64,000 bases of DNA from Ylistrum balloti (lineage: Eukaryota): assembly GCF_031769215.1 (NCBI RefSeq), contig NW_026782147.1:620001-684000 (forward strand). Reading direction: 5' to 3'. The notes beneath the pieces are model-generated. The model made no database searches. It was not told the origin of the DNA and saw nothing but the letters and a program-made list of their open reading frames with translations. A program made the translations under genes and the position numbers. Below are positions 719 through 56,957 of the stretch, piece after piece. Each line of letters starts with the position of its first letter. Position 1 is the first letter of the stretch.

Positions 719-3104
719 CAATGCATATGACGTCATGGATCTAGAGATATCAAGGCACACGGGGAATAACTGGAACCTTTGTCCAGTCACATGGGCCTTG
801 TCACACTCATAAGAGAGAAGTTAAGCGACAAATAACTAGCGATCATAACAAAACACTCGATTGGTTTAAATTGAGAAAATATTTTCAGTAAGATAATATT
901 CATGATGTAGTGAGCCTCTGTAAATGTTGGCTTGGAATATTAACTTTGTTATAACGTTTACATTATTTAATATCTGAAGAGTATATCAAATGTAGATGAA
1001 GAGTGACTATATAACGATATATAGACCATTGGTCGGTAGTTTGTACCAAATCCATGCCTGAAGAATATTTAACACAGCAAACTTTGTCTTAAGCCTTAAT
1101 ATTTGGTTTCCTTTTTATTGCAGATTCGAAGCGAGGAAAAAGAAAATGATTATTTAGTGAAAAATAAAAATATTTTTAAACAAAATTTGTTAATGCTTTT
1201 GTAATAATTCTCAATAAATTTTTTTTTTTACAAAAGGAAGGCAAAATCATTACCTATGAAACACTTAAGTGGGACAAGTATTTTTATATCTTAAACACTC
1301 GACTGTGGCTTATCTATTTGTTATACACGTCAACGGTCATGTATTAAACCGGAAGCAGTAGGTTACACCACTTGGGCGTCATTGACAACGCCAACGCCAA
1401 TGAAATAAGTTCCGAGAACTACTTACAGATAACATTTTTATTTACTTTCTGAAAGTATATACGTGTATATCTTGTCCCATTACATTTCAATTTCTTAAAT
1501 ATTTCCTGGAAACATTCATATTTTACAAGTTTTAAGGACAAACATTCACAATACTCTGTTACTTTTGATCCTAGTATATATAGTGTAGAATATTACAGAC
1601 GTGGCTTCTCCATCTTTGGTCTCTGTAAGGTTCAGAAAAGATAAGATTTAATTCTAACTATGTTTTCCAGACAGATTGAGGCGAGAGCGATACAGTGTCT
1701 AGCTACATATACATATGAGGACACTTCTAGTTCATTAAAGACCTAAGCTTACTTCAGAGTCCACACGAACAACACTTTACTGCTGTTTGGTCAGGTCCCC
1801 CCCCATCCCCCCTCTCCCCTCCCAAGTTAGATTTCTACTACCATTCAAATTAAAGTTTAAGTCTTACGGTGGTATTGCTTACTCCAGAAATGGAATGATT
1901 GAGATGTGGATTTTGACCAATCTTGATCATTTGCCCGTAAAAGACGTCTCTTCTGTAAGAACAGATTTCTCGCCTTCCTATTCAAACTCAAGGAACGCTA
2001 ATATCACATTCCTTTCAGACTAAAGGAATATGAAGTTAGAGGTGTTAAATATTAATTATTAAACCCGTCAGCCTCATTAGAGAACCTGACACTACCATAA
2101 GAGCATAATTATGGTATACTCCACAACCCTCTACCCCTCCACAAACATTTTGAAAGACCCATATGGACACGGGCTGTTTCTGTGTACATCGTGTTTTAAC
2201 TCACCGCATCCTAGGTGAATGTGTTTCTACCACTTTCATGGCCATCTTCGTTGTCTCTTAAAGGAGCATAGTCAATAAAAATGTAATATATATTTAATAA
2301 ACAAACAATATAAATTTTAACATAATAAATGTGAATTATCCCATTGAATTATGTAATTTTAGTGGCAAATTTTCAGTCAAGGGGCTGCGTTTGCCGAGTG
2401 GGTAAGGTATCTAGCTATCTTCATCACCAGCCCTCCACGTCTTGGATGCAGGTTCTTGCTTTCTCAGCCCCGTAATCAAGTGTAATTGCTCTAGCGATAA
2501 AGAGAGAAACGAAGGGTAGTAACTAAGGGAAATTAGGGTGTGGGTTGGAGGCCTACGTGGGACAGTAGTCATGTACTTTTATCATGTTTTGAAAATAAGT
2601 TTTGTATTCAGGTGGACATCATGTTAGCACTTGCAAAGTCTTCGGAAATCAGCTTTGACCTTTTGTGTCAAATTTCATTCATGGATATTCAACAATAGTT
2701 AAGCTTGGATTAAAGTGATATGTGGCATATGTTTCACAACTTAATAAGGCAAAGCCACGTGCTTAACTTAAGATTTTTTTTTACCCTGGGGCTTTTAGAT
2801 CTTCAATTCATCACACAACCAAATGTTTGACTTGTAAAATCATACGTGTGCCATGATGATAACTTACAGGTTTTATTCTGCTGTCTGTGACATTCCTTGT
2901 GTGAAGCACGTCACTGGTAAATTGGTGCATGAAAAACCTTATGTATTTGTTCCCTATTTATAAAATTTCATATTCTTTAAAGTAACTCCAGCTCCTTGTC
3001 TAATTTTTGGTATGACACCAAACATTACTTTGATCAAAATGGAGCATTAAGTTAGCATTTGTAAAGTTTAGTCAATAGTTAGAGGAGCATGGTAAAAATA
3101 CAAA

Positions 3105-3805
3105 AACAGGTCAAGAGTATCAGTGAAACTGATCACTGCTCATCGAAAAATGACTTTAATGGTGACAGAAATTTTATCAAAGGGAAATAATTCTGTAATT
3201 AAGGTGTTGTAGGCTCCGAGTTTGGTATAAAGCAACATTCTCTTAATATGAGTTTTATGCTCCTAGTTTTAATGCAAGCAAAGCTATGTTCATGACAGAT
3301 ATTTCAACAAAGGACAGCAACACTGTATTGAGGAGTCATGAGCCCTGAATTTGCTACACTTTTCCTTTGTTTGGTATGACTGATGTATGCTTCACTTCTC
3401 AACTTTCATGATCCTTGCTTAACTGTTGGCAAAGTTATGCTCCTCACAAGAAATTCTTAACGAAGAGCAATAACTGAGGGGTCAAGGGCCCTGGACTTTG
3501 TACACAGCGCACAGATCATGATACCTGATCAATGTATCCTCCATGTTTCATTGTTCTAGTAATGCAAATCAATTGAATTTTTGCTCTAGACACAAAATTT
3601 TAACAAATGGCAACAACTCTGTATTTAAATGGTTACGGGTCCTGAATTTGGAACACTGCACATCATCTTTGTAAGATCAATGTTTACAACTAGTTTCATG
3701 ATCCTTGCTTAACAGTGGGCAAATTTATGCTTTGCAAAAGGATGGACAGACGGACAGACAAGTGACGATTGTACTTCCCTGACAATTTTTGTGGACCATA
3801 AAAAA
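3105..3805 (+). mobile_element. non-autonomous dispersed repeat, HINE/Helentron-like
   Basis: Begins aacaggtcaagag, ends with a (GGAC/AGAC)n microsatellite and cataaaaa; similar 5' motifs (aacaagaggccc...gggcc...cgctcacctg) at ~4479, 29606, 41504, 46218, 46845. Confidence 0.35.
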
Positions 3806-3840
3806 AACTCAAAAAAACAAAATACCATAGACATCATTCA

Positions 3841-3846
3841 TTTAAT
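3841..3846 (-). promoter_or_regulatory. candidate poly(A) signal (ATTAAA) of the SR gene
   Basis: ATTAAA ~300 nt after the stop, followed by a T/GT-rich tract on the minus strand (3800-3822). Confidence 0.4.
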
Positions 3847-4144
3847 AATACATAAATGACATAATTTACAATGACAAAATGAAAATGAAATGACAATGCA
3901 TCCATTAAGAATGTAAAGACTTGTAAGAATTCACTAAACTGTAAAACTGATGATAAAAACTCTTGGTGTTAGAACAAGTTTTAACTTTGGAGGTTTAAAC
4001 TGTTGCTTTCCATAGCATAGTTATGTTAATGAATTAACATCATAACACACCAACCTATTTTCAGTAATCAAAGTATGGTATGTTTCGAGGTCAAGTTCAT
4101 CTACTTATTTTAAGGTAAAGTTAATTTACTTTTACTTGCAAGGC

Positions 4145-4451
4145 TCAGTCCGAGGCACTTTTTGACCTTGACCTCGACCTTGATCGTGAGTAAGATTTAG
4201 ATTGTCTCCTGCTTTCACCATTTGCTGCAGCAGGGCTCCTGCTCTTTGACTTGGAATTCAAAGACCTGCTCTTTGAAGGACTTCTAGACTTGGATCTGCT
4301 GTTGGAATGGCTCCTTCGTCTGTTGCTTCGCTTTCTGTCATCACTGTGTGACCTTGACCTTCTCCTCCTGTCCCTGCTGTGACTTCTGCTCATGGACCGT
4401 GACCTTGACCTAGATCTCCTCCTCCGTCTGTCCCGGGAATTGCTCCTGGAC
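4145..4451 (-). CDS. SR splicing factor last coding exon (RS domain)
   Basis: ttgcttcag|GTCCAGG; RS dipeptide-rich frame identical to ORF 4145..4393, TGA at 4147-4145. Confidence 0.92.
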
Positions 4452-5350
4452 CTGAAGCAAATGATGTTTATATCTTAACCCTGTCATGAGGCCAAATGGG
4501 CCTGTATTGCTCCACTGATACCAACTGTGACAGAACTTTTTTGTAGAATGTAACAGTAAAAAGAAAAACCACTTTTGGATCTGATGTTGAACAATGTGGG
4601 AGACAAATCATTTATTTAGATAACATCTGATTTGCTACTTTCAAAATTCAGCTGTAAGAACATTTTGCATCAAATTTGGTAACAAGGGGCTAAAGGGGAA
4701 AGTATGACACCTGTTTTGCAGCTTATAAAGAGTTTATATCTATATTCACTAGAGCAATGTTGCATTCAATTTTTAAACAAAAGTTGTCCTCAGCATAGCT
4801 GTACCTGTTGCTTACATATTTTTCTCTGCTACTGATACTTAGTACTTAATGCCTGATAAGTTGACAGCTGTCCGTGTTATACATGAAGTATGTCTACTTC
4901 TTAAGGAATCAACCCCGCCCCCCAGTCCATCATAATATGTATCCAGATATTTATTCAAGTTGACTTCACTTTTTAGAGACACATGGATTGGACCTTTTAC
5001 TGTACTTGACAGTTCACCAGTTCACAATATTTTCTTCATGGATTTCATATTTCTATCAATTATCACATAAAAATACATATTCAGTCAACAGGAAGGTTAT
5101 GCTTTCTCCAGCAGTCTTTACTTAAGATTGTGGTCTTCTGCAATATTTTTTTCATGATCTCAGACAAGTTGAATTATGTTGATAAAGTGGCTATGTGATA
5201 AATCCTTCCACAATATTCTACAGATTTCAATGTTGTTTACGAACCCAATCTACATATTTCAATGCTGTTGATGAACCCAAGAGCTAAATGCGTGACCAAA
5301 GTAGTCGAGCACGTCAACAATAGAGATTTCTGTTATTTCATATTATTTAC

Positions 5351-5493
5351 CTTCGTCTTCTCCTTGGAGAAGGTGATCTGTACCTTCCAGACCCTCCCCT
5401 CCCTCCTCGCCGGAAACCACCATTATACCGGTCATCTGGGCAGTCCCTGGCCCAATGTCCCGAACGATGACAGCGATAACATTCATCATAACC
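5351..5493 (-). CDS. SR splicing factor exon 5 (CCHC zinc knuckle, RGG, start of RS)
   Basis: gtgttgtag|GGTTAT...CGAAG|gtaaat; GYDECYRCHRSGHWARDCPDDRYNGGFRRGGRGGSGRYRSPSPRRRR (Cx2Cx4Hx4C). Confidence 0.92.
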
Positions 5494-5831
5494 CTACAAC
5501 ACAAAAATCATTGACATGAAATATTTCATGTTTTGAAGATATATTGAATATGTGAGTTTTAATTCAGAAACCAAAAGCCATGACACAAAAGTTACTTGTC
5601 TCAGGGATTGGCAGGATGACCTGGACAAAATTAAAGATCAAACGACTAACCCTTTGTGTAAATTACTGAAGTCAACCCTTTGATTAAGCCTTCAAGCAGA
5701 CATACTGCGAGACACTCTGGTCAAAATCCTTGTTGTATTTTGTTTCATATTTCATTTGTTTGTTAAGTTTTCTGTTTAAGTTAAAGATTTCTTTTACCCA
5801 GGTATTAACATCAACAGTCTACAGCACTCAC

Positions 5832-5927
5832 CCTGTTCATCATTGGTCTTCTGGAACTTCCCTTTGCCTGTTCAACAATAATACTGGAGCCCAAGATCTC
5901 CCGACCATTTTCATACTTAATCGCATC
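5832..5927 (-). CDS. SR splicing factor exon 4 (end of RRM)
   Basis: tatttcag|GATGCG...AACAGG|gtgagt; DAIKYENGREILGSSIIVEQAKGSSRRPMMNR. Confidence 0.92.
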
Positions 5928-6256
5928 CTGAAATAACAGAGACAGAGGAAAATCTAAATATCAACATAACTTAAACACTTATTTTGAAAGCATCCTATGG
6001 TATTTTTCTTAATTAATGCAACATATATTCCAAGTTACATTTCAAAAATCAAACCAGTTACTACATACCATTAAAATTTGCATATTCCAAGATAAAAGGT
6101 TTATGACAATCATCATGATGAATAGCAAATCTTCAGTTCCTGTTCATATTTGTTTACAAGAGACCAGACAACAACTTGTCAACAATACATTAATATCTAC
6201 ATTACCATTGCCAAACCACAAGAGACTAGAACACAAAAATGCTGGCAGTGACATAC

Positions 6257-6538
6257 TCTTGTTACACCTTGGGATGGAATAACGGAGGAGGAGCCGGGGC
6301 AGACAGACTGATTGGACACAAGATATAACTGGACACACTGGTCAGTCGGTGAAACGAGGATTTGCGACTGAATTGACTGCCTGATAGGCTGACCGGCTCC
6401 GACAGGAGGACACTGGTATGGAACATGGTTTTTGGACTAAGGTTTTTCTGATTATGTGTGTTGGCACTTGGATGTGACACTCTGTACTGGTGGTCAGGCT
6501 AGGCATGGCAGGACTCGCTCTCTTGCTAGCATTTTACC
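6257..6538 (-). other. candidate poison (PTC) cassette exon in SR gene intron 3
   Basis: GC-richer island in an AT-rich intron; taatttag|GGTAAAATG, in-frame TGA at 6496-6494, donor AAGA|GTATGT. Confidence 0.45.
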
Positions 6539-9900: not shown

Positions 9901-10238
9901 TTATACATGTAAAAAAAAAAAAAAAAACATTAACTTTATGCCTTAAACTCTATATTATAACCTACTGTCAGAGTGGAGCTAGAAAACTAAAATAACTTAA
10001 TGTTATACACAAGGCCATACATGTTTTTAAGTAGCGGTATCCGTATAATATTTATTTGTAAAGGATCTGATACTTACAAAAATCATTAAAACATCATTCA
10101 GGCGATACATACACGGAAATGATACCGTCTTTCTTATTGAGCGGTCACTACTCAGAATCACGTGATTTACTATTGTTTTGTACATAACTTTCAATGTAGC
10201 GCAAATACGAGTGATTTATTTTGAATGAGGTTGCCGAA

Positions 10239-11261
10239 ATGGAGCAGACGACAATTTTAGGCATCCAGGACAACCTAACATCACACGAGGACGTACCCAC
10301 ACGAACACTGCACCAGGTAGGCGCCACATTGATTGGGTCTTTGGGTTTCCTTGCAAATATGATGATTCTGATCGCAATCTTGAAGGCGAAACTATATCGA
10401 CAAAATGTGATTTTGTTTGTTCTCAATTTGGTGATAAACAACGCGCTTGTTTGTGCGATCTCACTGCCATATATCGCCGCCATGTCTTTTAACTACACTG
10501 ATGACGTGAACCTGACCATTTGTAAAGCTATGGGGTATATCACATATTCCATAACAGCTTCCGAGTTATTGGGACTTGATCTCGTAGCAATCAACCGATA
10601 TTTCCTTATAGTCAAATACAGCACATACTTAAACATCTACAACGACAAGAAAAACATAGCGATCATGATATGCTTGTCCTGGATAGTGTACCCGATAATG
10701 CTGCTGTTTCCGGCGACCGAAGTTTGGGGAAGTTTTACGTATGACCGGAACAGATTTTTTTGCAATCCATTCAAAGCTAAGGACAGCTTCGGAAAATTTT
10801 TCTCCGGATTCGCTGTGATAACTTCAGTTCCTTTACTGATCTTTGGATATACGAGTATTCTACCAAAAGTGTTTAAAACGAATCAACAAGTGAATTTAAC
10901 CCGGAGCAAGTCTGTGACCACTAAAAACCACACGGACAAGCTACGAAGACGTGACGTTCGTCTTGTGTCTTTAGTTCTGGTTTTACTAACAACATTTTGC
11001 CTAATGTATTTACCCTTTGCTGTGCTGTCCATCATTGACCCGACAACGTCAGCGGTTAACCCCAGGATGCACATCGCATTTCTTTACGTTGCTTGGGCAC
11101 ATTGTTTGGTAAACCCGGTTTTGTACGCTGTTCTGAACAGTCAGATCCGAAAGGCGATAAAGGACTTGTTTATAGTGGTTGACGACAAGGATGGTATCTC
11201 CGGGATCACCACAGTCAGCATATCAAGGACTGGACTGAATTCCATCGATACTTGTGTATGA
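10239..11261 (+). CDS. class A GPCR, moody/Tre1/melatonin-receptor-like, copy A (intronless)
   Basis: Seven hydrophobic segments, TM1 GxxxN (GFLAN), AINRY at TM3, TM6 CLMYLP, TM7 NPVLY, N-terminal NLT glycosylation site; first ATG at 10239 (ORF track begins at upstream TTG 10221). Confidence 0.9.
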   Translation: MEQTTILGIQDNLTSHEDVPTRTLHQVGATLIGSLGFLANMMILIAILKAKLYRQNVILFVLNLVINNALVCAISLPYIAAMSFNYTDDVNLTICKAMGYITYSITASELLGLDLVAINRYFLIVKYSTYLNIYNDKKNIAIMICLSWIVYPIMLLFPATEVWGSFTYDRNRFFCNPFKAKDSFGKFFSGFAVITSVPLLIFGYTSILPKVFKTNQQVNLTRSKSVTTKNHTDKLRRRDVRLVSLVLVLLTTFCLMYLPFAVLSIIDPTTSAVNPRMHIAFLYVAWAHCLVNPVLYAVLNSQIRKAIKDLFIVVDDKDGISGITTVSISRTGLNSIDTCV

Positions 11262-18682: not shown

Positions 18683-19702
18683 AGAGCAGTTGAGCGAACT
18701 CTCCATCATTGGCCAGCCCTGAAGTCGTACTTCTTATCTCACGAAGATGTAGAGAAGCCTGGACGTGTCAAGAGATGTGCTGACCTGTTGTCTAACCCTG
18801 AGATGTTGCTCTACTTCCATTTCCTGCAATTTCTTCTCCCCTTCCTTGTGAAATTCAACACCATGTTCCAGGCAGATGACACTCGTCTTCCATACCTGGG
18901 GAAGGAGATGCAACAACTCTTGAGGAAGCTGCTTGGAAAGTTTGTCTTGGCGAAGACGATAAGGGAAGCAGAGGATGTGACAGCCGTACCTTACAGAGAC
19001 ACCACTGTTCATCTGAAAGATCCATACCTAGCTGTTGGACTTTGCACTCGGGCTTACCTAAGTGAGCATGATGAAGACACTCAAGGAGTCACAGCAAGGT
19101 TCTTCAGCAGTGTGAGGAGATTTTACATAGCAGCTGTGGACAAGATGGTGAAGAAATTCCCATTTCATGACCCAGTCATCAACAAACTTCAGTTTCTTGT
19201 GCCTTCCTCACAGGATCATGTAAATCCAGCAAATGTTGTGGAGATAGGGAAGAGATTTCCTTCTGTCATTCAGGATGGTCAACTTGGCACACTTGAGGAG
19301 GAATATAGAGAATTTCTGTTATGCCCGGATGCTGACTTGCCAAAGTGGGAGGATGGGAAAACACCTGTAGACAGTTTCTGGGGAGGGATTGCCAGCTGTA
19401 AGACTGCAGTAACCAGGTCCATGCGATTCCCCATTTTGTACAAACTGGCCACATCATTGTGTACCCTGCCGAACAGCAACGCTGACTGTGAACGAGTGTT
19501 TTCAGTGCTACGGAAGGTACAAACGGACCAAAGATCACTTTTAGACCAGTCAACTTTGTCAGCTTTACTGACCTGCAAGCTGAACAGGGATGAGGACTGC
19601 TACAATTATAAGCCATCGACAACGACTTTAGCGACCGCGAAGTCTGCATGTGTTAGCTACAATAAGGAACTGTCATGTTCCCCCTCTATCTTCAGAGATT
19701 AG
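18683..19702 (+). pseudogene. hAT transposase, 3' portion (5'-truncated)
   Basis: Open frame RAVERTLHHWPALKSYF...FWGGI...LPNSNADCERVFSVLRKVQTDQRSLL (hAT C-terminal dimerisation motif); N-terminal part missing. Confidence 0.85.
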
Positions 19703-20422: not shown

Positions 20423-20907
20423 GGAGTTTGTAGTACCCACAGTATAGTAACCTGTTGGAAGAGAAGTGTTGAACTAATCGCTGAAATTTGATTGGTCGAC
20501 ACAGTTCGTTTTATTTCTTTTATATAAATTACGTACTCGTTGTTACGTATACTGAACCTATCCGTAGAATATAATTTGATTATAACAATAATAATTAATA
20601 TCATTGAAATACATGTAGTGTTAACCTACATTGTACATTTGTATCACGTGACTGTCATGTGACATAGACAATTTCTATATAGCATTGTATTGATAAAACA
20701 TAAGGGAACGAATATCAACAAGGAAACACAAATGATGTACAATTCACCATGTTACACGTATGAACATCATTCAGGTGATACACGGAAATGATACCGTCTT
20801 CCTTACTGAGCGGTCACTACTCAGAATCACGTGATTTACTGTTGTTTTGTACATAACTTTCAATGTAGCGCAAATACGAGGGATTTATTTTGAATGAGGT
20901 TGCCGAA

Positions 20908-22038
20908 ATGGAGCAGACGACACTTTTAGACATCCAGGACAACCTAACATCACACGAGGACGTACCCACACGAACACTGCACCAGGTAGGCGCCACATTG
21001 ATAGGGTCTTTGGGTTTCCTTGCAAATATGATGATTCTGATCGCAATCTTGAAGGCGAAACTATATCGACAAAATGTGATTTTGTTTGTTCTCAATTTGG
21101 TGATAAACAACGCGCTTGTTTGTGCGATCTCACTGCCATATATCGCCGCCATGTCTTTTAACTACACTGATGATGTGAACCTGACCATTTGTAAAGCTAT
21201 GGGGTATATCACATATTCCATAACAGCTTCCGAGTTATTGGGACTTGATCTCGTAGCCATAAACAGATATTTCCTTATAGTCAGATACAGCACATACTTA
21301 AACATCTACAACGACAAGAAAAACATAGCGATCATGATATGCTTGTCCTGGATAGTGTACCCGATAATACTGCTGTTTCCGGCGACCGAAGTTTGGGGAA
21401 GTTTTATGTATGACCGGAACAGATTTTTTTGCAATCCATTCAAAGCTAAGGACAGCTTCGGAATATTTCTCTCCGGATTCGCTGTGATAACTTCAGTTCC
21501 TTTACTGATCTTTGGATATACGAGTATTCTACCAAAAGTGTTTAAAACGAATCAACAAGTGAATATAACCCGGAGCAAGTCTGTGACCACTAAAAACCAC
21601 ACGGACAAGCTACGAAGACGTGACGTTCGTCTTGTGTCTTTAGTTCTGGTTTTACTAACAACATTTTGCCTAATGTATTTACCCTTTATTGTGCTATCCA
21701 TCATTGATATAAAAACGTCAGCGGTTGACCCCGGAATGCGCATCGCATTTCTTTACGTTGCTTGGGCACATTGTTTGGTAAACCCGTTTTTGTACGCTGT
21801 TCTGAACAGTCAGATCCGAAAGGCGATAAAAGACTTGTTTCTAGTGGTTGACGACAAGGATGGTATCTCCAGGATCACCAAAGTCAGCATATCAATTCCA
21901 TCGATACTTGTGTATGAACAAGTATTTCGGGAATTCAGCTACCGAATAGATGTAAAGAGTGTTGTTTTCAAGGGATTTCAAGTTTTCTTTTATCGAGGAT
22001 TGAAAGACATTGCGAAAAATAGAAAAGAAAATCAATAG
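20908..22038 (+). CDS. class A GPCR copy B with frameshifted, extended C-terminal tail
   Basis: ~97% identical to copy A by eye; 13-nt deletion (ggactggactgaa) after ATATCAA near 21895 replaces the last residues with a ~47-aa tail; all 7 TMs intact. Confidence 0.85.
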   Translation: MEQTTLLDIQDNLTSHEDVPTRTLHQVGATLIGSLGFLANMMILIAILKAKLYRQNVILFVLNLVINNALVCAISLPYIAAMSFNYTDDVNLTICKAMGYITYSITASELLGLDLVAINRYFLIVRYSTYLNIYNDKKNIAIMICLSWIVYPIILLFPATEVWGSFMYDRNRFFCNPFKAKDSFGIFLSGFAVITSVPLLIFGYTSILPKVFKTNQQVNITRSKSVTTKNHTDKLRRRDVRLVSLVLVLLTTFCLMYLPFIVLSIIDIKTSAVDPGMRIAFLYVAWAHCLVNPFLYAVLNSQIRKAIKDLFLVVDDKDGISRITKVSISIPSILVYEQVFREFSYRIDVKSVVFKGFQVFFYRGLKDIAKNRKENQ

Positions 22039-44270: not shown

Positions 44271-44999
44271 TAAAAAGTTACATGCTGATGATAAAAACTA
44301 AAGACCAATTCCATATATACTCTGCAGACCTAAATCCATAAATATAACAGCACGATCATTCTGGTTGATCCATTTCCTAGAAGATTCATAGATTGTCCCC
44401 GTAAATTTTGTTTATGCTACAGATGTATGCATGAATTTTCAATGTCTTACAGATTTTAATACAATACCTATAATATATTTATACTATCATAGATATCTCC
44501 CCCATACTTAATATTCATCAGCAACACTAATAGAACCCTTTCTTGTATGTCTTACAGCTTGACTTATCTCTGTCAAAGGCTGATGTTCTATAACAAAATC
44601 GAGGCCGAGTGAACAGTGAGATATTATGTTAACGTCGTCTTAAAATTGAGACAAATAGGACTCAAACATATACAAATAACAAATTCTATTCCTCATACAA
44701 AATTTTGTCTAAATTGCATCAAAAACCCTCTCATTTAGTTTGTTTTCTAATTTGTCAATTTGATTAGATTACCTCCCTTTACAATTCTTCGGAAGAGATT
44801 CAATTGAATTTGGCATCATTTCGATAATGACATCACTTAAAACCAAAAGGAAAAAGAAAAAAAAAATTATTGGGTAAGGGTACCAGACAGATCAGATTAA
44901 TAAGAAAAATCAAGCACTGAGTGACATGTGAGATTTCCCTGTCTCGTGTACAAGAAAGATTAATTGCCCTCTAATTACAGCTCAAACACTTTTACATAC

Positions 45000-46158
45000 C
45001 TTCTGTTACATGGCCAATGTCAATGTCAATTTGTGGAGAAATTTCTTCTTTTAAACCTTCCTCCTCGATCAGATCTCCATCCCGTAGACTAGCCCCTGAA
45101 GGACTAGTTGGTATGTTGTGTGTAAAGGGAAGCAACTCAGCCACATAGGGGCACACCATAACAAACTCAATGTCTGGAACTACAAGTGGCACAGAAAACG
45201 TGGTGGGTACAGTAGATGTCCCCAGAAAATATTCTATATCTGCTGTCAGTTGAGTTTGGAAGTCTGTAAAAGATTCTAAAAGTCTCATAAGAAAAAGAAA
45301 CTGGGAATGACTCATTTGGGCCTTCACTGGACCACCAACCTTTGCCACAAGGTTGTAAGTGGCCAGCTGTAAACTCTGGCCTTTATCTTCACTTTTTGAA
45401 GATTTCATTGTTTTATCACATGAGGAAGGTAATTCCTCGGGACTGGTGTCATAGGACTCACTGTCTGTTGAATAATATTCTTTGAGTAGCCTTCGTGAGG
45501 GTCTATCTCTGTGTGGTGATGCGGGGCTACCTTGGTCCGTGTCAAAGGTCAGGGAATTGGAGTCGGCATTGCTACTCCCTCTTCTGCTATTTCCACTGAT
45601 TCCCAAAACATCAAGTTGATTATTTTGCTTAAGTTTTGTTTCTGCTTCATCCATCACTAACGGCATACAGAACCAGAGAGTCACTGGTACAGATTCAACG
45701 AAAGGTATCGGACGAGACTTAGAGACTGGCACTCCCACGAACTCCAGCCAAGCCTGATCTGCACACACACTCCACACATCAAAGCTAGCATTACGCTTCA
45801 GTGTGTTGGTTTTCAGGAGTTTGGCAATAACCTCTGGCCCTACCTGTGATTCCATGCCCTGTGGTAATTGACCAGCTACTAACTCTTTGGCATAGCGTTG
45901 CATATAAGCATTGTCTCGTCCACTAGCAAAGGTACTGAAGTGAGGGGGAAGGCTTGTAAGAGGGTTATTGTTGTTTGGGTATTGTGAGGAAGTAAACAGA
46001 TGCCCTTCTGTATAGTGGCGTAACACCTCTGCCAAGTCTGCCCGCCCTGTCTGTTCCTCCACGTGGGTATTAGTGACACAGAGTTTGGACACTTGCAGTT
46101 GGACTCCCTCTGGCCGATCAGGCTGGTTTTCCACCTTCCTTTCTGCTGACACAATCAC
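45000..46158 (-). CDS. BLTP3B: BLTP3 large exon
   Basis: gtcgtag|GTG ATT...GAA G|gtatgt; NTLKRNASFDVWSV...RPIPFVESVPVTLW, QMSHSQFLFLMRL. Confidence 0.9.
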
Positions 46159-48900: not shown

Positions 48901-49936
48901 AAAGTTATTTTCAAGGGATTCCAATTTTCACAATTTTCACAATTTTCAGGATTCCAATTTTCACAATTTTCAGGAAAATATTGATACACTGGAAATGAAT
49001 TATGTTCCAGTTAAAATAATATCTGTGAAATAGACATCCTTTTCCCATTGAAATATTGATAAAACTGCACCCTTTCACAGAAACCATGATTCCATTGTGC
49101 AAATTTGATATTAGACCTTCATCATGATAATTAAAGAATGGATTTCTCATGTTAATAACAGAGCATTTAATAGATTGTACCATAAACAAATATAATCAAG
49201 GGTTGAATTATGTTGAAATTGATGAATGATGACAATTAGTCTAAAACACTGCATTTCCTATATTGACAAAAAAATCCCAAATTTGATATCACAGAGAACT
49301 TGGTTAATTCATAACAGAACTGTAATAGAAAGTCAACACTTAATTATGAGAAACTGTTTGTCACGCCTTCCCACAGATAGGTTGTCCTGTAACGTAACGA
49401 AAGTCGAAGTCTGACTTGATGCGTGTTGAAGGCATTTAAAATTTCTTTCCCTTACATGAAGCTCAAGAGTATTAGATAATACCGGAGAGTGGGAAAATTA
49501 ACATGGATGTCACAGCCAATCTTCCCAAACTGTCAGCTACAGGAAAGATGCATTAGATGTCTACAGAACTACATATTTTTCAAATCACGCAACACTTCTA
49601 ATACTCAGCTTAGCTTGTCAATACAAGCTCTTTATTTCAGAATAAGACAGCTCATTTGTATACTTCATTATTTTTGAGAATTAACTTTTACGGATTTCAT
49701 ATTAATGATCTACAAATCAGCAGAAATATCCTCCCCAGGGAGATATGTGGCTAGATGCACTTCTAAATTGATAAGTTTTGTCATCTGTTAGCATGGAAAC
49801 TATGGAAGATCAGGGAATTCAGCACAAAATTGAATATCAGAATAGATTATAGGACCTTGAAAGAGTTAATTATACAGAATCACACAAAGTCAAGGAAAGC
49901 CCGAGAGACAATGTTTTAACTTTCAGTATAAGAATT

Positions 49937-50229
49937 AAATGATAATTTAATATTGTTATTAAATTATAGTTTATATACAATAAGTTCTCCTTGCTAGCTG
50001 ACATAGCAATTTTCAATTAAGATTTTCATTATGTATTAGTGTTAGTGATTTTCCTTGCCCTGCAGGCATTATAATTTTGTTTATTTATGTATGCTGATGA
50101 GTTCTGGTTGATGCTAATTAATTGACCAATCAGCGTTCTCGGGGAGGATGCCCTGTTAGGGATCTGAAGGCCCCGCAGCATATAGTTTGAGTTTTTGGTG
50201 GAGGCATTTGTTTGTGAAATTTGTGCATT
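49937..50229 (+). repeat. Ngaro repeat A1 (293 bp)
   Basis: Identical by eye to 55222-55514. Confidence 0.95.
50124..50133 (+). promoter_or_regulatory. CCAAT box in repeat A (candidate element promoter)
   Basis: gaCCAATcag matches the NF-Y consensus; weak TATA-like catatag at 50179; position near the 3' end of A1 fits the split-direct-repeat replication model. Confidence 0.4.
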
Positions 50230-50596
50230 ATCTTTCGTTTATTAACACTTTGCATACGTTCCTACCTTCCCCTTATGGATATACCTTTATAAAGTGGCTT
50301 AAGGATGTGATTAGTCAACCTAATAGTGACGGAGTTTACTTTGTAACTTTTCTTTTGACATTTAATCCTTCGAGGAGTGCTGAGAGACTGGGTTCTCGCA
50401 TTCGCCATTTTGGATACGTGTGTGTTTTCACGTAGGACTAGTTAAAAAGGACCTCTTCCACAAGTTCTTGTGGTGTGACGTATTTCCGCATTCACGCTCG
50501 ACAACGAGATTTGGTGTTCTTGACGTTATAAACCTTAGCTTACGGCTATTGATTGTGTTTACGTTTTTATTTTGTGTGTGTCAACTCCGACTAGTT

Positions 50597-51979
50597 ATGG
50601 GACCCAAACGCAAGAACATTCGATCTGCGCCCTACGATCCCGAGCTTCTAGATAACTGGACGATCGCCAGGCTACAAGAGGAACTGCGCGCCCTAAACGT
50701 TCCGTTCCGCACTGGATGCAAACGCAGAAGTTTGGTGAGGATGCTGCGCGAAGCCAGGACAGCCAGCGTCCCTGTTACGGAAGTGAGAGCGGCTAACCCC
50801 GTCGTGCCTCATCGGGAAGGTGCGGTATCCCATGATACCTCGCGACAAGATGGCGGCCCCCACGTAAATTCACGTGAACGGGAGAGCTCCAGACCTAACG
50901 ATGTCAATCAGCACCTAATTGACATTGTTACAAACTTGACAGAAAGTGTTGCTACGCTGCAGAACTGCTACCAACGTCTAGAGAGCAGGTTGGAATCGCA
51001 AACACGACGTCCAGTGGCGGCAGCCGCCGGTAGTGAAAATCAGCCCGTAGTTGACTCGTCTCGACCAGTTCCAGCAGTGATAAACTCGCCATCAGTGCAG
51101 CTGGTTCCAACACCACTACAGGCTGAGTACACTTTAGAAACAGCTTACAAGCGTTTTCAGGAGGACAGCACACTATCTCAAGGTGAGAATTCTTCCAAAC
51201 GATCACGTTTTGGCTATGTGTCGGAATCTTTACCATTGGTAGAAACTGTATCTCCCGCGCTGCGTCAACAAATCATTACGGGTAGAGATGTTAACCTGGC
51301 CGCCTTGCTTATCCCGTATTACGTAGGTAGCTCTGACCCTGAGTGCCATTCTTCTTCAAAACCCGATTGTAGACTTTCACGCACCTTGTCGTTGAATGAA
51401 TTCATCTTGGCATTCGGAGTGTATAAGCAGGTGATGTGCTCTGTCTATCCTGCTAGACGTGTTGAACTCGATCTATACGAAAGAGATATAGTAGACATGG
51501 GTACCAGGTACAATGTCGGTTTCTATGAGTACCACAGACAATTTTCAGCTAGAGCCGCAGCACAGCTCCGCTACAACAACACACCCATAGATTGGTCAGT
51601 TAGGAACAATGTTTTATTTTGTAACATTTTCACAAACCAACGACCACTCACCTGTGACTTGTGCGACAGTCCTTTGCATGGAACAGGTTTCTGTCCTACT
51701 TCTGTGGTAGAACCCAAACGTCAAGGGACCCATAGTGGAAATTTTAGGAGTTCAAAGCAGGGATCTACTTCCCGTCCTACCGGTCCCCCTTCTGTTGACA
51801 GTCATGGGCGCCCTCGCATGTACCAAGATGGTATAGAATTATGCAATAACTTTAATAGTAATTTTGGATGCAACTCATCTTCCTGTTCTTACAAACATGT
51901 CTGTTTGTCCTGCAAAGGCAGCCACTCCAAATCTGCCTGCCCTTTAGAGCTCACCAGGACTTTGAACAAGAAAAAATGA
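50597..51979 (+). CDS. Ngaro Gag-like ORF1 (460 aa)
   Basis: ATG 50597 (MGPKRK); N-terminal WTIARLQEELRALNVP...RRSLVRML SAP/HEH-like motif; C-terminal CDLCDSPLHGTGFC and CNNFN...C...C...HVCLSCKGSHSKSAC Cys/His fingers. Confidence 0.88.
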   Translation: MGPKRKNIRSAPYDPELLDNWTIARLQEELRALNVPFRTGCKRRSLVRMLREARTASVPVTEVRAANPVVPHREGAVSHDTSRQDGGPHVNSRERESSRPNDVNQHLIDIVTNLTESVATLQNCYQRLESRLESQTRRPVAAAAGSENQPVVDSSRPVPAVINSPSVQLVPTPLQAEYTLETAYKRFQEDSTLSQGENSSKRSRFGYVSESLPLVETVSPALRQQIITGRDVNLAALLIPYYVGSSDPECHSSSKPDCRLSRTLSLNEFILAFGVYKQVMCSVYPARRVELDLYERDIVDMGTRYNVGFYEYHRQFSARAAAQLRYNNTPIDWSVRNNVLFCNIFTNQRPLTCDLCDSPLHGTGFCPTSVVEPKRQGTHSGNFRSSKQGSTSRPTGPPSVDSHGRPRMYQDGIELCNNFNSNFGCNSSSCSYKHVCLSCKGSHSKSACPLELTRTLNKKK

Positions 51980-53591
51980 ATATGTTATTCCACCCGAGAG
52001 CTTCTACACCTATTAACTTAACAGCTTTAAAAACAGCTTTAGACGGCCACCCAGATGAAAATTTTGTGAACTTTTTATTAGATGGCTTAACTTTTGGTTT
52101 TGACACCGGTTTCCAGTTCCTACCATTAAACTCGTTTGAGTGTTCCAATCTGAAATCAGCTCTGGCGGATCATGAAAGCGTGACAGATTTAGTCAACAAG
52201 GAAGTAGTCAGAGGATACCTCCTGGGTCCTTTTGATCATATCCCATACAAAAACTACCGAATCAACCCTATTGGCCTTGCGGAGCACAAATATTCAAAGA
52301 AAAAACGCCTCATAGTTGACATGTCGGCACCCCATCAAGATGTGAACAATCCTAGCCTAAACAGTTTAATAGATAAGATAACTTGCTCTCTTAAATACAC
52401 TTCTATTGACGACGCTATTAGGGTTATCAAGGAATTACATCAGAATGCCTGGCTTATGAAAACCGACATCACGGACGCTTTTAAATTACTCCCAATTAAG
52501 CCAGAACTGTGGCCCTATCACGGTATATGTTGGGATGGAAAATATTACTTTTTCACTAGGCTGGTTTTCGGGAGTCGCTCAAGTCCTAAACTTTTCGACA
52601 ATCTCTCCCGTGCCATCTGCTGGATAGCTCAGAACAAATATAACATTCAGCACATCCTGCACCTTCTGGATGATTTCCTCGTTATTGAGCCGGCATCCGC
52701 TATCGCTACTAGAACAATGTCCAGCTTCCTTAAAGTGTTTCAAGATCTCAATATTCCTATTGGAGCACACAAAACAGTGGGTCCAGTTACCTGTTTAGAA
52801 TACTTGGGGGTGTTTTTGGACTCTACTCGTATGGAATGTAGACTTCCAGCTGAGAAAGTATCTCGTATCATATGTGTGCTAGAGTCTTTTGCTAATAGGA
52901 AATGTTGCACGAAACGCGAGCTACTAAGCTTATTAGGACACATGAATTTCGCCACACGTTGTGTTAAACCAGGAAGATCGTTTGTCTCGCACCTCATTTC
53001 ACTTTCGACTTCTGCGCGCGAACTTCATTTTCATGTTAAATTAAATGCGGAATGTCGTTCGGACCTAAACATGTGGGCCTTGTTTTTGAGAACTGGAATG
53101 GTGCTTCTTTTTTCCTTGATGATCATGTGACTAGTGCAGCTGACCTCCACCTGTTTACAGATGCTACTAATGTAGCTTTTGGTGGTATTTATAAAAATCA
53201 GTGGTTCCAAGGTGTTTTCCCTGCTGAACTCCAGCGTTCTGAACCTTCAATGGCCTTGTTCGAATTATACCCCATCGTTATGGCGTGTGTGTTATGGGGC
53301 CATCAGTGGTGCAAAAAGCGTGTTTTGTTTCATTGTGACAATATGGCAACTGTCGACATTATTACTAAAGGAAGGTCTAAGGTTAAGAGCATTATGAGAC
53401 TAGTTAGAACTTTAACTTTTCATTCAGCTATGAACAATTTTATTGTGCATGCTCGGCATATACCTGGATCTGATAATAATATTGCTGACGCTATCTCCCG
53501 TTCACAGATGTCAAGGTTTCGGAAACTGGCTCCTCAGGCAGACCTTCATCCTGTTCCTTGCCTCCCAATGGTGTCAATTATGATGACTTAA
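51976..53591 (+). CDS. Ngaro Pol (RT + RNase H), one -1 frameshift at ~53083-53088
   Basis: ATG overlaps the gag stop (ATGA); KTDITDAFKLLP, RLVFGSRSSP, HLLDDF; RNase H LFTDA...ELYPI...HCDN...IADAISR; ORFs 51868..53130 and 53052..53591 join at MWALFL/ENWNG. Confidence 0.9.
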
Positions 53592-54559
53592 GCCTGCACG
53601 TGGACTCATTGTGGGACTCTGCTTTAAGCCAACGTACAAGAGCTTCGTACCAGTCGGGACTTAACTGTTTATTAACTTTCATCCTTATGCAGGGCACAAG
53701 TTTTCCTGCCAACACGTTGCCTGCAGTGGATGAGGATGTGCTTATTCGTTTCGTGACACACTGCCAGAAGTCTTTGCACCTTAAATTTGACACTATCAAA
53801 CTATACCTAGCTGGTATTAGATTTCACTACATTAAGAATAAGTTGGGGGACCCTACCGCTAACACTCTACGATTGTCTTATATCTTGCGCGCTGTTAAGA
53901 AGACTCAAGTTAACACTTCTGTCAAACGTCTCCCTATTACTTGTGCAATCTTAGCTAATATGTGTAACGCTATTGCTCAACAGGGTATGTTTAACCCATT
54001 TGTTGATCTCATGTTGTTATGTATTTATAAAACCGCTTTCTTTGGTTTTTTACGCTGTGGTGAATTTACATGTAATGCTGTGTGGGATACCAATTTTATT
54101 CGTATTTGCGATATTAGTGTACTACCAGATTTATCGTGTTTCAATCTCACGCTGCGTTCATCCAAAACAGACCCTTTTGGTAAAGGGGTAAATATTAGTA
54201 TTTTTGAAAATAGTGTTTTTACACCTGTGTCCACTATGAGAGAATACTTAAACCTAAGACTATCCTCAGGTGCCACTCTTTCTTCTCCTTTATTTTTAGA
54301 TCATATCCATTCATCTACACCCTTAATGCGTCATACATTTATTTCGTATTTAAAGGAGACTTTGTCTAGGGTTGGTATAAATAACAAATCTTTCAATGGC
54401 CATTCTTTCCGTATTGGCGCTAGTACCTCTGCTGCAGCAGCTGGAGTGGAAGACCATGTCATTCAAACTTTAGGTAGATGGTCATCTGACTGTTTCATAC
54501 GCTATATACGGATCAATCCTGCTACTATCCGTCGGGCTCAACAGGTTATGTCCTCCTGA
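53558..54559 (+). CDS. Ngaro tyrosine recombinase
   Basis: Catalytic set intact: FLRCGEF (R), SKTD (K), HSFR (H-x-x-R), GRW, RYIR (Y); frame open from 53489, first ATG only at 53687. Confidence 0.92.
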   Translation: MPPNGVNYDDLSLHVDSLWDSALSQRTRASYQSGLNCLLTFILMQGTSFPANTLPAVDEDVLIRFVTHCQKSLHLKFDTIKLYLAGIRFHYIKNKLGDPTANTLRLSYILRAVKKTQVNTSVKRLPITCAILANMCNAIAQQGMFNPFVDLMLLCIYKTAFFGFLRCGEFTCNAVWDTNFIRICDISVLPDLSCFNLTLRSSKTDPFGKGVNISIFENSVFTPVSTMREYLNLRLSSGATLSSPLFLDHIHSSTPLMRHTFISYLKETLSRVGINNKSFNGHSFRIGASTSAAAAGVEDHVIQTLGRWSSDCFIRYIRINPATIRRAQQVMSS

Positions 54560-54815
54560 ATAGGGTGGGGATGGGTTTTTTAGGGATTAACTATTACTTG
54601 TCTTGGCCTTTATTTTCTCATGAGTTGGTCTAGGTCTATAGTTCTTGTCATTTCAATCTACTTGTATTATTAAGCATACTATGAGTTTAAATTAGGCCTA
54701 TAACCTTGCGTTGCATTTTACTATGCTTATTTTAATATCTATTATTATCTCTTGGGGGCTCTCACTCTGTTTTACCTGCGTGTTATCACTCTGTTAAAAC
54801 ATACGTTCATTTTTG

Positions 54816-55137
54816 GCTCTTAATTCTTGGGGAATTTTACCCCCAATTCATAATAATAGAATATTCCCAATTTGTTTCAGCTTCTCTCATATCGTTGAGG
54901 GTCTAGCTAACATTTTCAGCTTCTCTCATATCGTTGAGGGTCTAGCTGGTGGTGAATATTCTATTTATAATGCTGTTTTTCTAGGGCCACTTGCAGAGTC
55001 TAGTAGCTTCTCTGGTATCGTCCAGGGTCTAGTAACTTCTCTGTAGGGACTCCTAATCTAGCTCCGAAACAGCTCAGAGTCTTGTTTTAAGTTATAATTT
55101 TCTAGTAGTTAATAGTGATTATGAATAGAGTGAGTAG
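54816..55137 (+). repeat. Ngaro repeat B1 core (322 bp)
   Basis: 321/322 identical to 55852-56173 (a54995 versus c56031). Confidence 0.95.
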
Positions 55138-55221
55138 CCCCTGTTACGCCAAACCGTAGCTTGTCTATTTTCTTAAGTGTAATAAACATTTAACTGTTCT
55201 TGTGCGTTCTTGTTGTATATA

Positions 55222-55514
55222 AAATGATAATTTAATATTGTTATTAAATTATAGTTTATATACAATAAGTTCTCCTTGCTAGCTGACATAGCAATTTTCA
55301 ATTAAGATTTTCATTATGTATTAGTGTTAGTGATTTTCCTTGCCCTGCAGGCATTATAATTTTGTTTATTTATGTATGCTGATGAGTTCTGGTTGATGCT
55401 AATTAATTGACCAATCAGCGTTCTCGGGGAGGATGCCCTGTTAGGGATCTGAAGGCCCCGCAGCATATAGTTTGAGTTTTTGGTGGAGGCATTTGTTTGT
55501 GAAATTTGTGCATT
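55222..55514 (+). repeat. Ngaro repeat A2 (293 bp)
   Basis: Identical by eye to A1. Confidence 0.95.
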
Positions 55515-55684
55515 CCCACCCACCGTCCCCGGCTACACCATTGGTTTTATTTTATACTCATGTATTTTTTGTTTTTGTTTCAGGTGCAACAGTTATAAGA
55601 TAACCATATTTTTATGTATAATGGGCTACTCACTCTTAGTAACTTAAGGATCTTCTGCATTTATCAGTTTCTTATTAATATTTG

Positions 55685-56173
55685 TTTTTACCTGGGTGTT
55701 ATCACTCTGTTAAACATGCGTTCATTTTGGCACTGAATTCTTGGGGAATTTTAACCCCAATGCATAATAATAGAATATTCCCAATTTGTTTCAGCTTCTC
55801 TCATATCGTTGAGGGTCTAGCTAACATTTTCAGCTTCTCTCATATCGTTGAGCTCTTAATTCTTGGGGAATTTTACCCCCAATTCATAATAATAGAATAT
55901 TCCCAATTTGTTTCAGCTTCTCTCATATCGTTGAGGGTCTAGCTAACATTTTCAGCTTCTCTCATATCGTTGAGGGTCTAGCTGGTGGTGAATATTCTAT
56001 TTATAATGCTGTTTTTCTAGGGCCACTTGCCGAGTCTAGTAGCTTCTCTGGTATCGTCCAGGGTCTAGTAACTTCTCTGTAGGGACTCCTAATCTAGCTC
56101 CGAAACAGCTCAGAGTCTTGTTTTAAGTTATAATTTTCTAGTAGTTAATAGTGATTATGAATAGAGTGAGTAG
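55685..56173 (+). repeat. Ngaro repeat B2: diverged partial copy 55685-55851 plus near-exact copy 55852-56173
   Basis: Direct comparison with 54769-55137. Confidence 0.92.
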
Positions 56174-56957
56174 TCCCAGAGGGATTCATGGATTTACATT
56201 GCATTGAAAGTATTTCCATGTCAACAATAGATGTGGGCTTTGTTACTTGGCTGAATAGAGGAGGTGTAACTTGACCAATGACAGCTGTGTGGCCTAAGAT
56301 ACCATGGTTGGTGGTCAGCCTTGGAGATTGATTCAGAGTGGTCATTGACCATAGCCAGTGGTCACAGACAGTCTTATCAATAATCTCTCTGTTGCACTGA
56401 TCGATCATGGAACAGACACTTTATGCTGGGAGCAGTGGTCAGATAAACTGACCAGTCCACACATATACAGTTGGGCACTTACTGATGTTTTGTCGTGTTT
56501 GGTTGTTGTAGTGTAGGCACTTCTATGTCTAGTATTGTGTTTAACTCCTCCACTAAAAAGCTGAACAGTAAATGTAGCACCCTCTAAATAAATAAATATG
56601 TACTTTGTATGACACAATCCAGTCAGTTATAACAGGTTGCAAACAGTACAATAATCTATACAGATTAACACTGGCTTAGATATGAATTAGAAATGAGGAC
56701 CACATCGAGTGTGATCTGTCTTGAGGGAGTTTCTATCTCGTTTTTCTCATATAAAAATTATAATTATTATCATGAAGCATTGATATTTCAGCAAAGAATA
56801 CAATATGATAAAATAGAAATTATCACCAGTTTTAAAATATTGATGTAGAAGTTGGCTTTAGGTCAATATATCAAGTTCCTCATTTGAAAATACATTTAAG
56901 TTTCATGGGTAGTACCTAAAGTGTGACTAGTAGTAATGATAGTTGGAGATTGTTAGA

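Follow-up and report, generated by a model that had tools for sequence, protein, structure and literature searches.

Removal of pol as a predicted intron would join Gag in frame to a tyrosine recombinase in a scallop Ngaro retrotransposon

In a Ngaro retrotransposon of the scallop Ylistrum balloti, the whole reverse-transcriptase (RT) gene very probably behaves as an intron, and its removal joins the start of Gag in frame to a tyrosine recombinase (YR) that has no start codon of its own. While use of the intron in this particular family is inferred, precisely spliced, re-inserted DNA copies of related oyster and mussel elements show that the homologous intron is spliced. The intron and the fusion had been predicted in a first-pass annotation from sequence alone; its coordinates are confirmed here, and its interpretation is supported.

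The Ngaro element and its predicted intron

The analyzed window, a stretch of 64,000 nucleotides of Y. balloti contig JAUZWB010001126.1, holds a young Ngaro element (about 49932-56177) with the following features:

49932-50230 (+): split direct repeat A1, the left end of the element
50597-51979 (+): gag open reading frame (460 codons), with an N-terminal HeH/SAP-like helix-loop-helix and a long helix, followed by the conserved core and Cys/His knuckles
50597-51182 (+): predicted coding exon 1, i.e., Gag residues 1-195 plus the first base of the junction codon
51179-51188 (+): donor CAAG|GTGAGA ("type 1", scallop family)
51183-53507 (+): predicted intron (2325 nt; GT..AG, phase 1), comprising the rest of gag, all of RT, and most of RNase H
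51279-51287 (+): second phase-1 donor candidate CGG|GTAGAG, at the Gly codon of the gag motif G-R-D-V-N, the ancestral "type 2" position used in the other bivalve families
51976-53591 (+): pol (RT then RNase H), split in this copy into two frames (51976-53130 and 53052-53591), with the frame break near 53085-53095, inside the intron
53484-53507 (+): 3' splice region, i.e., GCTGAC (branch-like CTGAC at 53485-53489), the pyrimidine-rich TATCTCCCGTTC (pyrimidine-rich stretch at 53491-53503), and CAG| at 53505-53507, lying over the RNase H codons A-D-A-I-S-R-S-Q
53508-54559 (+): predicted coding exon 2, i.e., a linker and then the two-domain tyrosine recombinase, with the first 28 codons overlapping the RNase H tail, which stops at 53591
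54814-55142 (+): split direct repeat B1
55218-55514 (+): split direct repeat A2
55848-56177 (+): split direct repeat B2, the right end of the element

The element satisfies the criteria for Ngaro (DIRS order). Profile searches identified RVT_1 (E = 1.2e-11) and Phage_integrase (E = 6.2e-7), both above the Pfam cut-offs, and the RNase H motif ADAISR is present. The split direct repeats have the A1 – ORFs – B1 A2 B2 arrangement, A1 and A2, as well as B1 and B2, being 100% identical; the element ends are shared with two sibling copies (L001 and L002), to which the window was aligned. The gene order is gag, RT/RNase H, YR. There is no further Pfam domain in pol and no room between the RNase H stop (53591) and the YR for a methyltransferase domain, whose absence separates Ngaro from DIRS1 and PAT. 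The siblings L001 and L002 retain one open pol frame of 576 codons where the window has 422 + 183. No second Ngaro element was found in the window, the other long open reading frames being GPCRs, a hAT remnant, and a BLTP3 exon.

The recombinase frame opens at 53489, straight after a TGA inside GCTGAC, and contains TTG at 53558, the first ATG at 53687, and the stop at 54559. Donor and acceptor are both phase 1, and the join reads ...TLSQ-D-VKVSETGSS.... Of all GT dinucleotides in gag, the one at 51183-51184 has the best match to MAG|GTRAGT (6 of 7 positions). The second candidate, ACGG|GTAGAG with GT at 51282, was not noted in the first-pass annotation and matches the consensus weakly (3 of 7).

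The same join is already present in the public gene model at this locus, LOC132557283 in RefSeq, whose protein is 100% identical to the window and maps to 50741-51181 plus 53507-54556, and equally to the sibling loci L001 and L002. This model starts at an internal Met (ATG 50741) rather than at the gag ATG (50597), and hence the 5' extent of the message is uncertain, but the exon end is the same. Gag-YR fusion models with the same acceptor and an Asp junction codon exist in Mizuhopecten, Argopecten, Pecten, Ostrea, Saccostrea, Mytilus, and Haliotis. Gene models alone are weak evidence, as other pipelines produced RT-YR fusions for similar elements and Gnomon models can propagate between species.

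Junction RNA was not seen for this family. Assembled Logan contigs of four sequencing runs, compared with positions 50230-55200 of the window at 90% likeness, covered the element unspliced, including one contig of 4.6 kb, and showed no joint between 51182 and 53508. However, these runs are only guessed to be RNA, are 90–95% alike rather than identical to the element, and contigs drop minor isoforms, so that this observation neither supports nor excludes splicing. A word-index protein search centered on the junction of the Mizuhopecten fusion found only four NCBI models and no transcript-derived (Logan) fusion protein for the scallop family.

Intronless copies in related elements

The strongest, albeit indirect, evidence for splicing comes from an Ostrea edulis copy, L007. 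It is a complete element with 100% identical A and B repeats and a single Gag-YR open reading frame of 582 codons. Compared with its full-length sibling L010 (99.3% and 97.9% identical), it lacks exactly positions 2845-5016, which read GTAAGG...TTTCCAG. Two further intronless Gag-YR fusions, L012 from Mytilus galloprovincialis and L014, a contig of a TARA DNA metagenome, are joined at the homologous codon. No terminal repeats were detected for L012, so that this copy may be old or partial, whereas L007, with its complete terminal repeats and intact fusion frame, looks like a mobilized non-autonomous Gag-YR element rather than a crippled copy. No intronless copy was found for the scallop family itself.

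An origin of these copies by DNA deletion between short repeats is very unlikely: although a 3-nt CAG microhomology flanks the missing segment in L010, three independent lineages have lost the same homologous segment, bounded by GT and a pyrimidine tract plus AG, always in frame at the same Asp codon.

Conservation of the splice sites

Homologous introns are modeled in eight further loci (L004-L006, L008-L011, and L013), and the sites are conserved at synonymous positions. The acceptor codons are TCY CGN Txx CAG in 9 of 9 bivalve loci, with CGT in eight and CGA in one (L009); given the codon usage of the elements themselves, the joint p is about 1e-7 over six lineages. The RNase H tail (Q-M-x-R-F-R) is conserved as protein, and hence part of the acceptor conservation is protein-driven. 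The caveat raised in the first-pass annotation, that the acceptor could arise from codon choice in RNase H, is answered by the synonymous-site bias and by the pyrimidine enrichment. In 39 of 40 Ngaro-like families there is an in-frame CAG 2–12 codons after ADxxSR, from which the YR frame is open, and which lies 172–182 codons before the GFLRCGE motif. The 14 nt upstream of it are 78% pyrimidine, against 52% at control CAG codons (p = 1e-17).

The donors fall into two types. The codon at the type-2 position is GGT in 8 of 9 loci and GGC in Argopecten, and it is GGT in 5 of 5 lineages outside the scallop type-1 family (p = 0.005). In the scallop family this donor is weak or lost, and a new strong phase-1 donor, CAAGGTGAGA, situated 99 nt upstream, is the only 10-nt invariant run in a 120-nt alignment of four scallop genera with variable flanks. 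In distant metagenome families a crude consensus score places a phase-1 GT on top in some cases (L015, L043, L050, L069, and L093), while in others it does not or the gag frame was not found; we make no claim about donors outside molluscs.

Expression of the recombinase and alternative explanations

We suggest that the full-length RNA serves as genome and as message for Gag and Pol, and that a fraction of it is spliced by the host spliceosome from the donor at 51183 to the acceptor at 53507, which removes the C-terminal two thirds of gag and nearly all of pol. The spliced message, starting at the gag ATG, would encode Gag residues 1-195, an Asp codon made across the junction, a disordered linker, and the complete Cre-like tyrosine recombinase. 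This is very probably how a recombinase whose own frame has no usable ATG is translated, although it remains an inference that the fusion is the active enzyme. The first ATG (53687) lies about 40 residues inside the Cre-like N-terminal domain. The structural model of the fusion from residue about 226 onward matches Cre over 330–345 columns (E = 5e-10). In some distant families an ATG is found soon after the acceptor, and hence the fusion may not be obligatory everywhere.

The description of the Gag N-terminus as SAP-like and coiled-coil, given in the first-pass annotation, is tentatively supported, but as a resemblance only. The Gag of the window gave no Pfam hit at E <= 0.01, and the window's own sequence had none when relatives were searched for sub-threshold matches. 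The best hit, HeH for the Ostrea homologue, scores 26.0 bits against a cut-off of 28.9, and SAP reaches E = 0.065 for Mizuhopecten. The AlphaFold model of the Mizuhopecten homologue shows a confident helix-loop-helix at residues 23-55 plus a long helix. The N-terminus shared with Gag may tether the recombinase to Gag assemblies or to DNA, whereas a role in packaging, as proposed in the first-pass annotation, is speculation.

Among the alternatives, the one that survives best, while still unlikely, is that the recombinase is made from the unspliced RNA, either by a -1 ribosomal frameshift from the RNase H frame, yielding Pol-YR, or by non-AUG initiation such as at TTG 53558, the GT/AG pair being incidental and the gene models prediction artifacts. 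Indeed, the YR frame is -1 relative to RNase H in 54 of 56 loci, the overlap is a constant 105 nt from ADxxSR to the stop in nine bivalve loci, and only unspliced contigs were seen. However, no X_XXY_YYZ slippery heptamer was found in the RNase H/YR overlap of these nine loci, and the intronless, repeat-flanked copies demonstrate splicing at the homologous sites. The bias of synonymous sites towards splice signals lies upstream of where any YR-frame coding would start, and donor conservation in a variable stretch of gag is not explained by this model. The two routes could coexist.

Somewhat less likely still, splicing might be a by-product, cryptic or host-imposed, that destroys the genomic RNA, so that the fusion has no role and the intronless copies are dead ends. 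Spliced, re-inserted by-products seem to occur for other retrotransposons, such as human L1, and L012 shows no detectable terminal repeats. On the other hand, the phase is kept in every family and was kept through the donor switch of 99 nt, all fusions are open through a full recombinase, codon choice maintains the signals, and the YR has no alternative start that preserves its N-terminal domain.

In the papers that we could search, Ngaro elements are described as having separate or overlapping open reading frames, with no account of how the YR is translated and no mention of splicing or of a Gag-YR fusion, although the fusion models are already present, unremarked, in RefSeq. Spliced subgenomic mRNAs, with a donor in or near gag and an acceptor near the 3' end of pol, are probably used by retroviruses and some LTR retrotransposons; here, the product would be an in-frame fusion of the Gag N-terminus with the integration enzyme, in an element that uses a tyrosine recombinase rather than a DDE integrase, and nearly all of pol would be the intron. 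In retroviruses, Gag-Pol fusion by frameshift or read-through brings the enzyme into the particle and sets its ratio to Gag; in this case the fusion would be made by splicing, not recoding, and would keep only the N-terminal third of Gag, without the capsid-like core or zinc knuckles. Compared with Cre/XerD-type recombinases, the enzyme is eukaryotic and retrotransposon-borne, and would have an appended HeH/SAP-like and coiled-coil N-terminus taken from Gag.

It is possible, though the evidence leaves this slightly less likely than not, that pol as an intron is the ancestral, general way in which Ngaro elements of marine invertebrates express their recombinase, that the fusion is the active integration enzyme recruited through the Gag N-terminus, and that the spliced RNA is itself reverse-transcribed and integrated in trans, founding lineages of non-autonomous Gag-YR elements such as L007.

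The recombinase frame of these retrotransposons usually has no start codon and overlaps RNase H, and a conserved intron that removes pol and borrows the gag start gives a concrete, testable answer to the question of its translation. It adds to the known expression strategies of retroelements an enzyme fused to Gag by splicing rather than by frameshift, and shows that spliced element RNAs can be re-inserted as complete, repeat-flanked Gag-recombinase elements. Finally, it explains dozens of "uncharacterized protein" models in mollusc RefSeq annotations and provides annotators with a rule, i.e., to look after ADALSR for a pyrimidine tract and an in-frame CAG.

Element structure and the proposed intron

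A single Ngaro-type retrotransposon occupies 49932-56177 of the window in Ylistrum balloti (contig JAUZWB010001126.1, assembly GCA_031769215.1). Its main features, together with those of its surroundings, are as follows.

10221-11261 and 20890-22038, + strand: two uninterrupted ORFs of rhodopsin-family GPCRs (7tm_1, E about 5e-25), about 10.7 kb apart, probably a tandem pair
18788-19702: hAT transposase remnant (C-terminal dimerisation domain)
44992-46158, minus strand: exon of a BLTP3A/B-like lipid-transfer gene, just upstream of the Ngaro insertion
49932-50230: split direct repeat A1
50597 (ATG) to 51979 (stop): gag
51183-53507: proposed intron
53489: opening of the tyrosine recombinase (YR) frame
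54814-55142: split direct repeat B1
55218-55514: split direct repeat A2
55848-56177: split direct repeat B2

A1 equals A2 and B1 equals B2, each pair being 100% identical. Between the repeats, gag is followed by a reverse transcriptase (RT; Pfam RVT_1), an RNase H ending in the ADAISR motif, and the YR (Pfam Phage_integrase). Two sibling copies elsewhere in the same genome (loci L001 and L002) are 99.8-99.9% identical, and hence the family is young. In the window copy, the pol frame is broken near 53085-53095, so that the RT and RNase H parts lie in different frames (422 + 183 codons), whereas the siblings keep one open frame of 576 codons. The break lies inside the proposed intron and hence does not touch the proposed spliced message. 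The gag stop and the pol start overlap as AAG AAA AAA TGA ATATG (within 51960-51990), with a run of six A just before the stop and ATG overlapping TGA. As pol is in the -1 frame, either a frameshift on the A-run or termination-reinitiation could make Pol.

The first-pass annotation proposed an intron that fuses the beginning of Gag to the YR, and every coordinate it gave is confirmed. The donor is CAAG|GTGAGA with GT at 51183; CTGAC at 53485-53489 is followed by a pyrimidine-rich stretch and by CAG at 53505-53507. The YR frame opens straight after a TGA, with TTG at 53558 and the first ATG at 53687. Exon 1 would end after 195 codons plus one base, while exon 2 supplies two bases; thus, both sites are phase 1, and the join reads ...TLSQ-D-VKVSETGSS.... 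By a simple match to MAG|GTRAGT, this donor is the best of all GT dinucleotides in gag (6 of 7).

The intron is already present in the public annotation. The best database hit of the YR frame is the "uncharacterized protein LOC132557283 [Ylistrum balloti]" (P0001; 497 residues, 100% identical), whose sequence contains ...EDSTLSQDVKVSETGSS.... It maps on the window as 50741-51181 plus 53507-54556, which is the intron proposed in the first-pass annotation, and it maps the same way on L001 and L002, although the model starts at an internal Met (50741) rather than at the gag ATG. Similar Gag-YR protein models exist in several molluscs, namely, Mizuhopecten (P0002, P0011), Argopecten (P0003), Pecten (P0121, P0150), a second Ylistrum family (P0060), Ostrea (P0027), Saccostrea (P0032, P0058, P0065, P0066), Mytilus (P0035, P0044, P0163), and Haliotis (P0165, P0097). 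In an alignment of eleven of these fusions, the junction residue is an invariant Asp. Gene models alone are weak evidence, as some pipelines produced RT-YR fusions instead, and models can be copied from species to species. In Pecten maximus (locus L013, 3001-32114), the RefSeq model P0121 joins the Ngaro Gag exon and part of the recombinase exon to nine downstream exons of an arylesterase/paraoxonase-like host gene, i.e., a modelled chimeric element-host transcript that uses the same Ngaro intron.

Splice sites and intronless copies in related families

The models were mapped on their loci. The acceptor is always located at the same place, two codons after the S-R of ADxxSR, reading TCY CGN Txx CAG|ATG. 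In contrast, the donor has more than one position. Most families use the Gly codon of the conserved gag motif G-(K/R/M)-D-(V/I)-N, which reads G|GTAAGG, G|GTAGGG, or G|GTATGG ("type 2"). The scallop family of the window uses a donor 99 nt upstream, CAAG|GTGAGA ("type 1"), present in Ylistrum, Mizuhopecten, Argopecten, and Pecten. In that family the old type-2 site is weak (CGG|GTAGAG at 51282 in the window; CGG|GTAGGG in Mizuhopecten) or gone (GGC in Argopecten). Two Saccostrea models (P0058, P0065) show a third, still earlier join that gives a shorter Gag part, again with Asp at the junction. All of these donors are phase 1. A donor switch that keeps the phase, with decay of the old site, is what one expects if the in-frame fusion is under selection.

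Three loci encode the Gag-YR fusion as one uninterrupted ORF in DNA. The clearest is L007 of Ostrea edulis, with A1 = A2 and B1 = B2 at 100% identity and a 582-codon ORF. A full-length element of the same genome, L010, is 99.3% identical to it on the left and 97.9% on the right, and L007 lacks exactly L010 2845-5016, a segment that begins GTAAGG and ends CTCTCTCTCGTTTCCAG. The L007 element (2077-6433) sits inside the range of a host gene with FAD_binding_4 and FAD-oxidase_C domains, and the identity of its repeats indicates that the insertion is recent. L012 (Mytilus galloprovincialis) and L014 (a TARA DNA-metagenome contig) are joined at the homologous codon, ...NIIS-D-GEIS... and ...NIIQ-D-DQVP..., respectively. 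Thus, three independent lineages have lost the same segment, bounded by splice signals, in frame. A spliced RNA that was reverse-transcribed and inserted is by far the simplest explanation, as a deletion at a 3-nt microhomology would have to recur precisely. No such copy was found for the scallop family itself. Assembled contigs of four sequencing runs covered the element without a joint at the intron, and one contig of 4.6 kb ran through it unspliced; however, this result is neutral, since three of the runs are only guessed to be RNA, all are 90-95% alike rather than identical, and contigs lose minor isoforms.

Conservation of the sites beyond protein constraint

As the RNase H tail is conserved as protein (Q-M-x-R-F-R), we considered synonymous choices, using the codon usage of the nine bivalve elements themselves as the background. 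Gln is encoded by CAG in 9 of 9 cases (background 0.46), Ser by TCY in 9 of 9 (0.41), and Arg by CGT in 8 of 9 (0.22). Counting the scallop family once (six lineages), the joint probability is about 1e-7. The type-2 Gly codon is GGT in the five lineages outside the scallop type-1 family (p = 0.005). These figures assume that lineages are independent at silent sites, which is reasonable at 40-60% protein identity but is not proven. In a 120-nt alignment of the four scallop genera around the type-1 donor, CAAGGTGAGA is the only ten-base invariant run, while its flanks differ in sequence and in length.

A scan of metagenome contigs with the fusion profile yielded 80 more Ngaro-like loci of unknown hosts (L015-L094). 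Clustering of all loci with the -1 frame relation at 85% nucleotide identity gave 40 families, of which 39 have an in-RNase-H-frame CAG 2-12 codons after ADxxSR, with the YR frame open from it. The distance from this CAG to the GFLRCGE motif is 172-182 codons in all of these 39 families, and hence the putative acceptor is fixed relative to the recombinase, not relative to RNase H. The 14 nt before it are 78% pyrimidine, compared to 52% before 302 control in-frame CAG codons of the same pol genes (Mann-Whitney p = 1e-17). Examples of the site are TTTAATTTTCAG and CTTCCTTCCTTTCAG. The first Met after the site is at least 35 codons downstream in 27 of the 39 families and is near the start in a minority. 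For donors outside molluscs, a crude consensus scoring is suggestive only, and we make no claim there.

Translation of the recombinase

The AlphaFold model of the Mizuhopecten fusion (P0002, mean pLDDT 73) has a confident helix-loop-helix at residues 23-55, a long helix at 99-135, a disordered linker across the junction, and a two-domain recombinase from residue 226 to the end. The best PDB matches found by Foldseek are Cre recombinase, over 330-345 columns with E about 5e-10. The first Met of the YR frame falls about 40 residues inside that domain, after two of its helices, and starting there would truncate the N-terminal, DNA-clamping domain. The stretch between the RNase H stop (53591) and the first ATG (53687) does not overlap any other ORF, yet it is strongly conserved as protein. 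Translation must therefore begin upstream of the ATG. The RNase H/YR overlap has no canonical slippery heptamer in nine loci. The N-terminal motif gives sub-threshold Pfam hits to HeH/LEM (26.0 bits against a cut-off of 28.9) and to SAP; this fits the "SAP-like" description of the first-pass annotation, but it is a resemblance and not membership.

No mention of natural splicing or of a Gag-YR fusion was found in the papers on DIRS and Ngaro elements that we searched, although a remark in the 2004 paper that named Ngaro cannot be excluded; one overview says only that Ngaro elements do not usually have ORF overlaps. Splicing to express a downstream gene seems to be well established in retroviruses and in some LTR retrotransposons, and therefore we regard the Ngaro case as differing in its Gag-YR product rather than as a new category. 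Overall, the interpretation that a spliced message encodes a Gag-recombinase fusion is supported: it is very likely that the homologous intron is spliced in bivalve Ngaro elements, it is probable that the family of the window uses 51183-53507, and, with somewhat less certainty, the fusion is likely to be the working recombinase.
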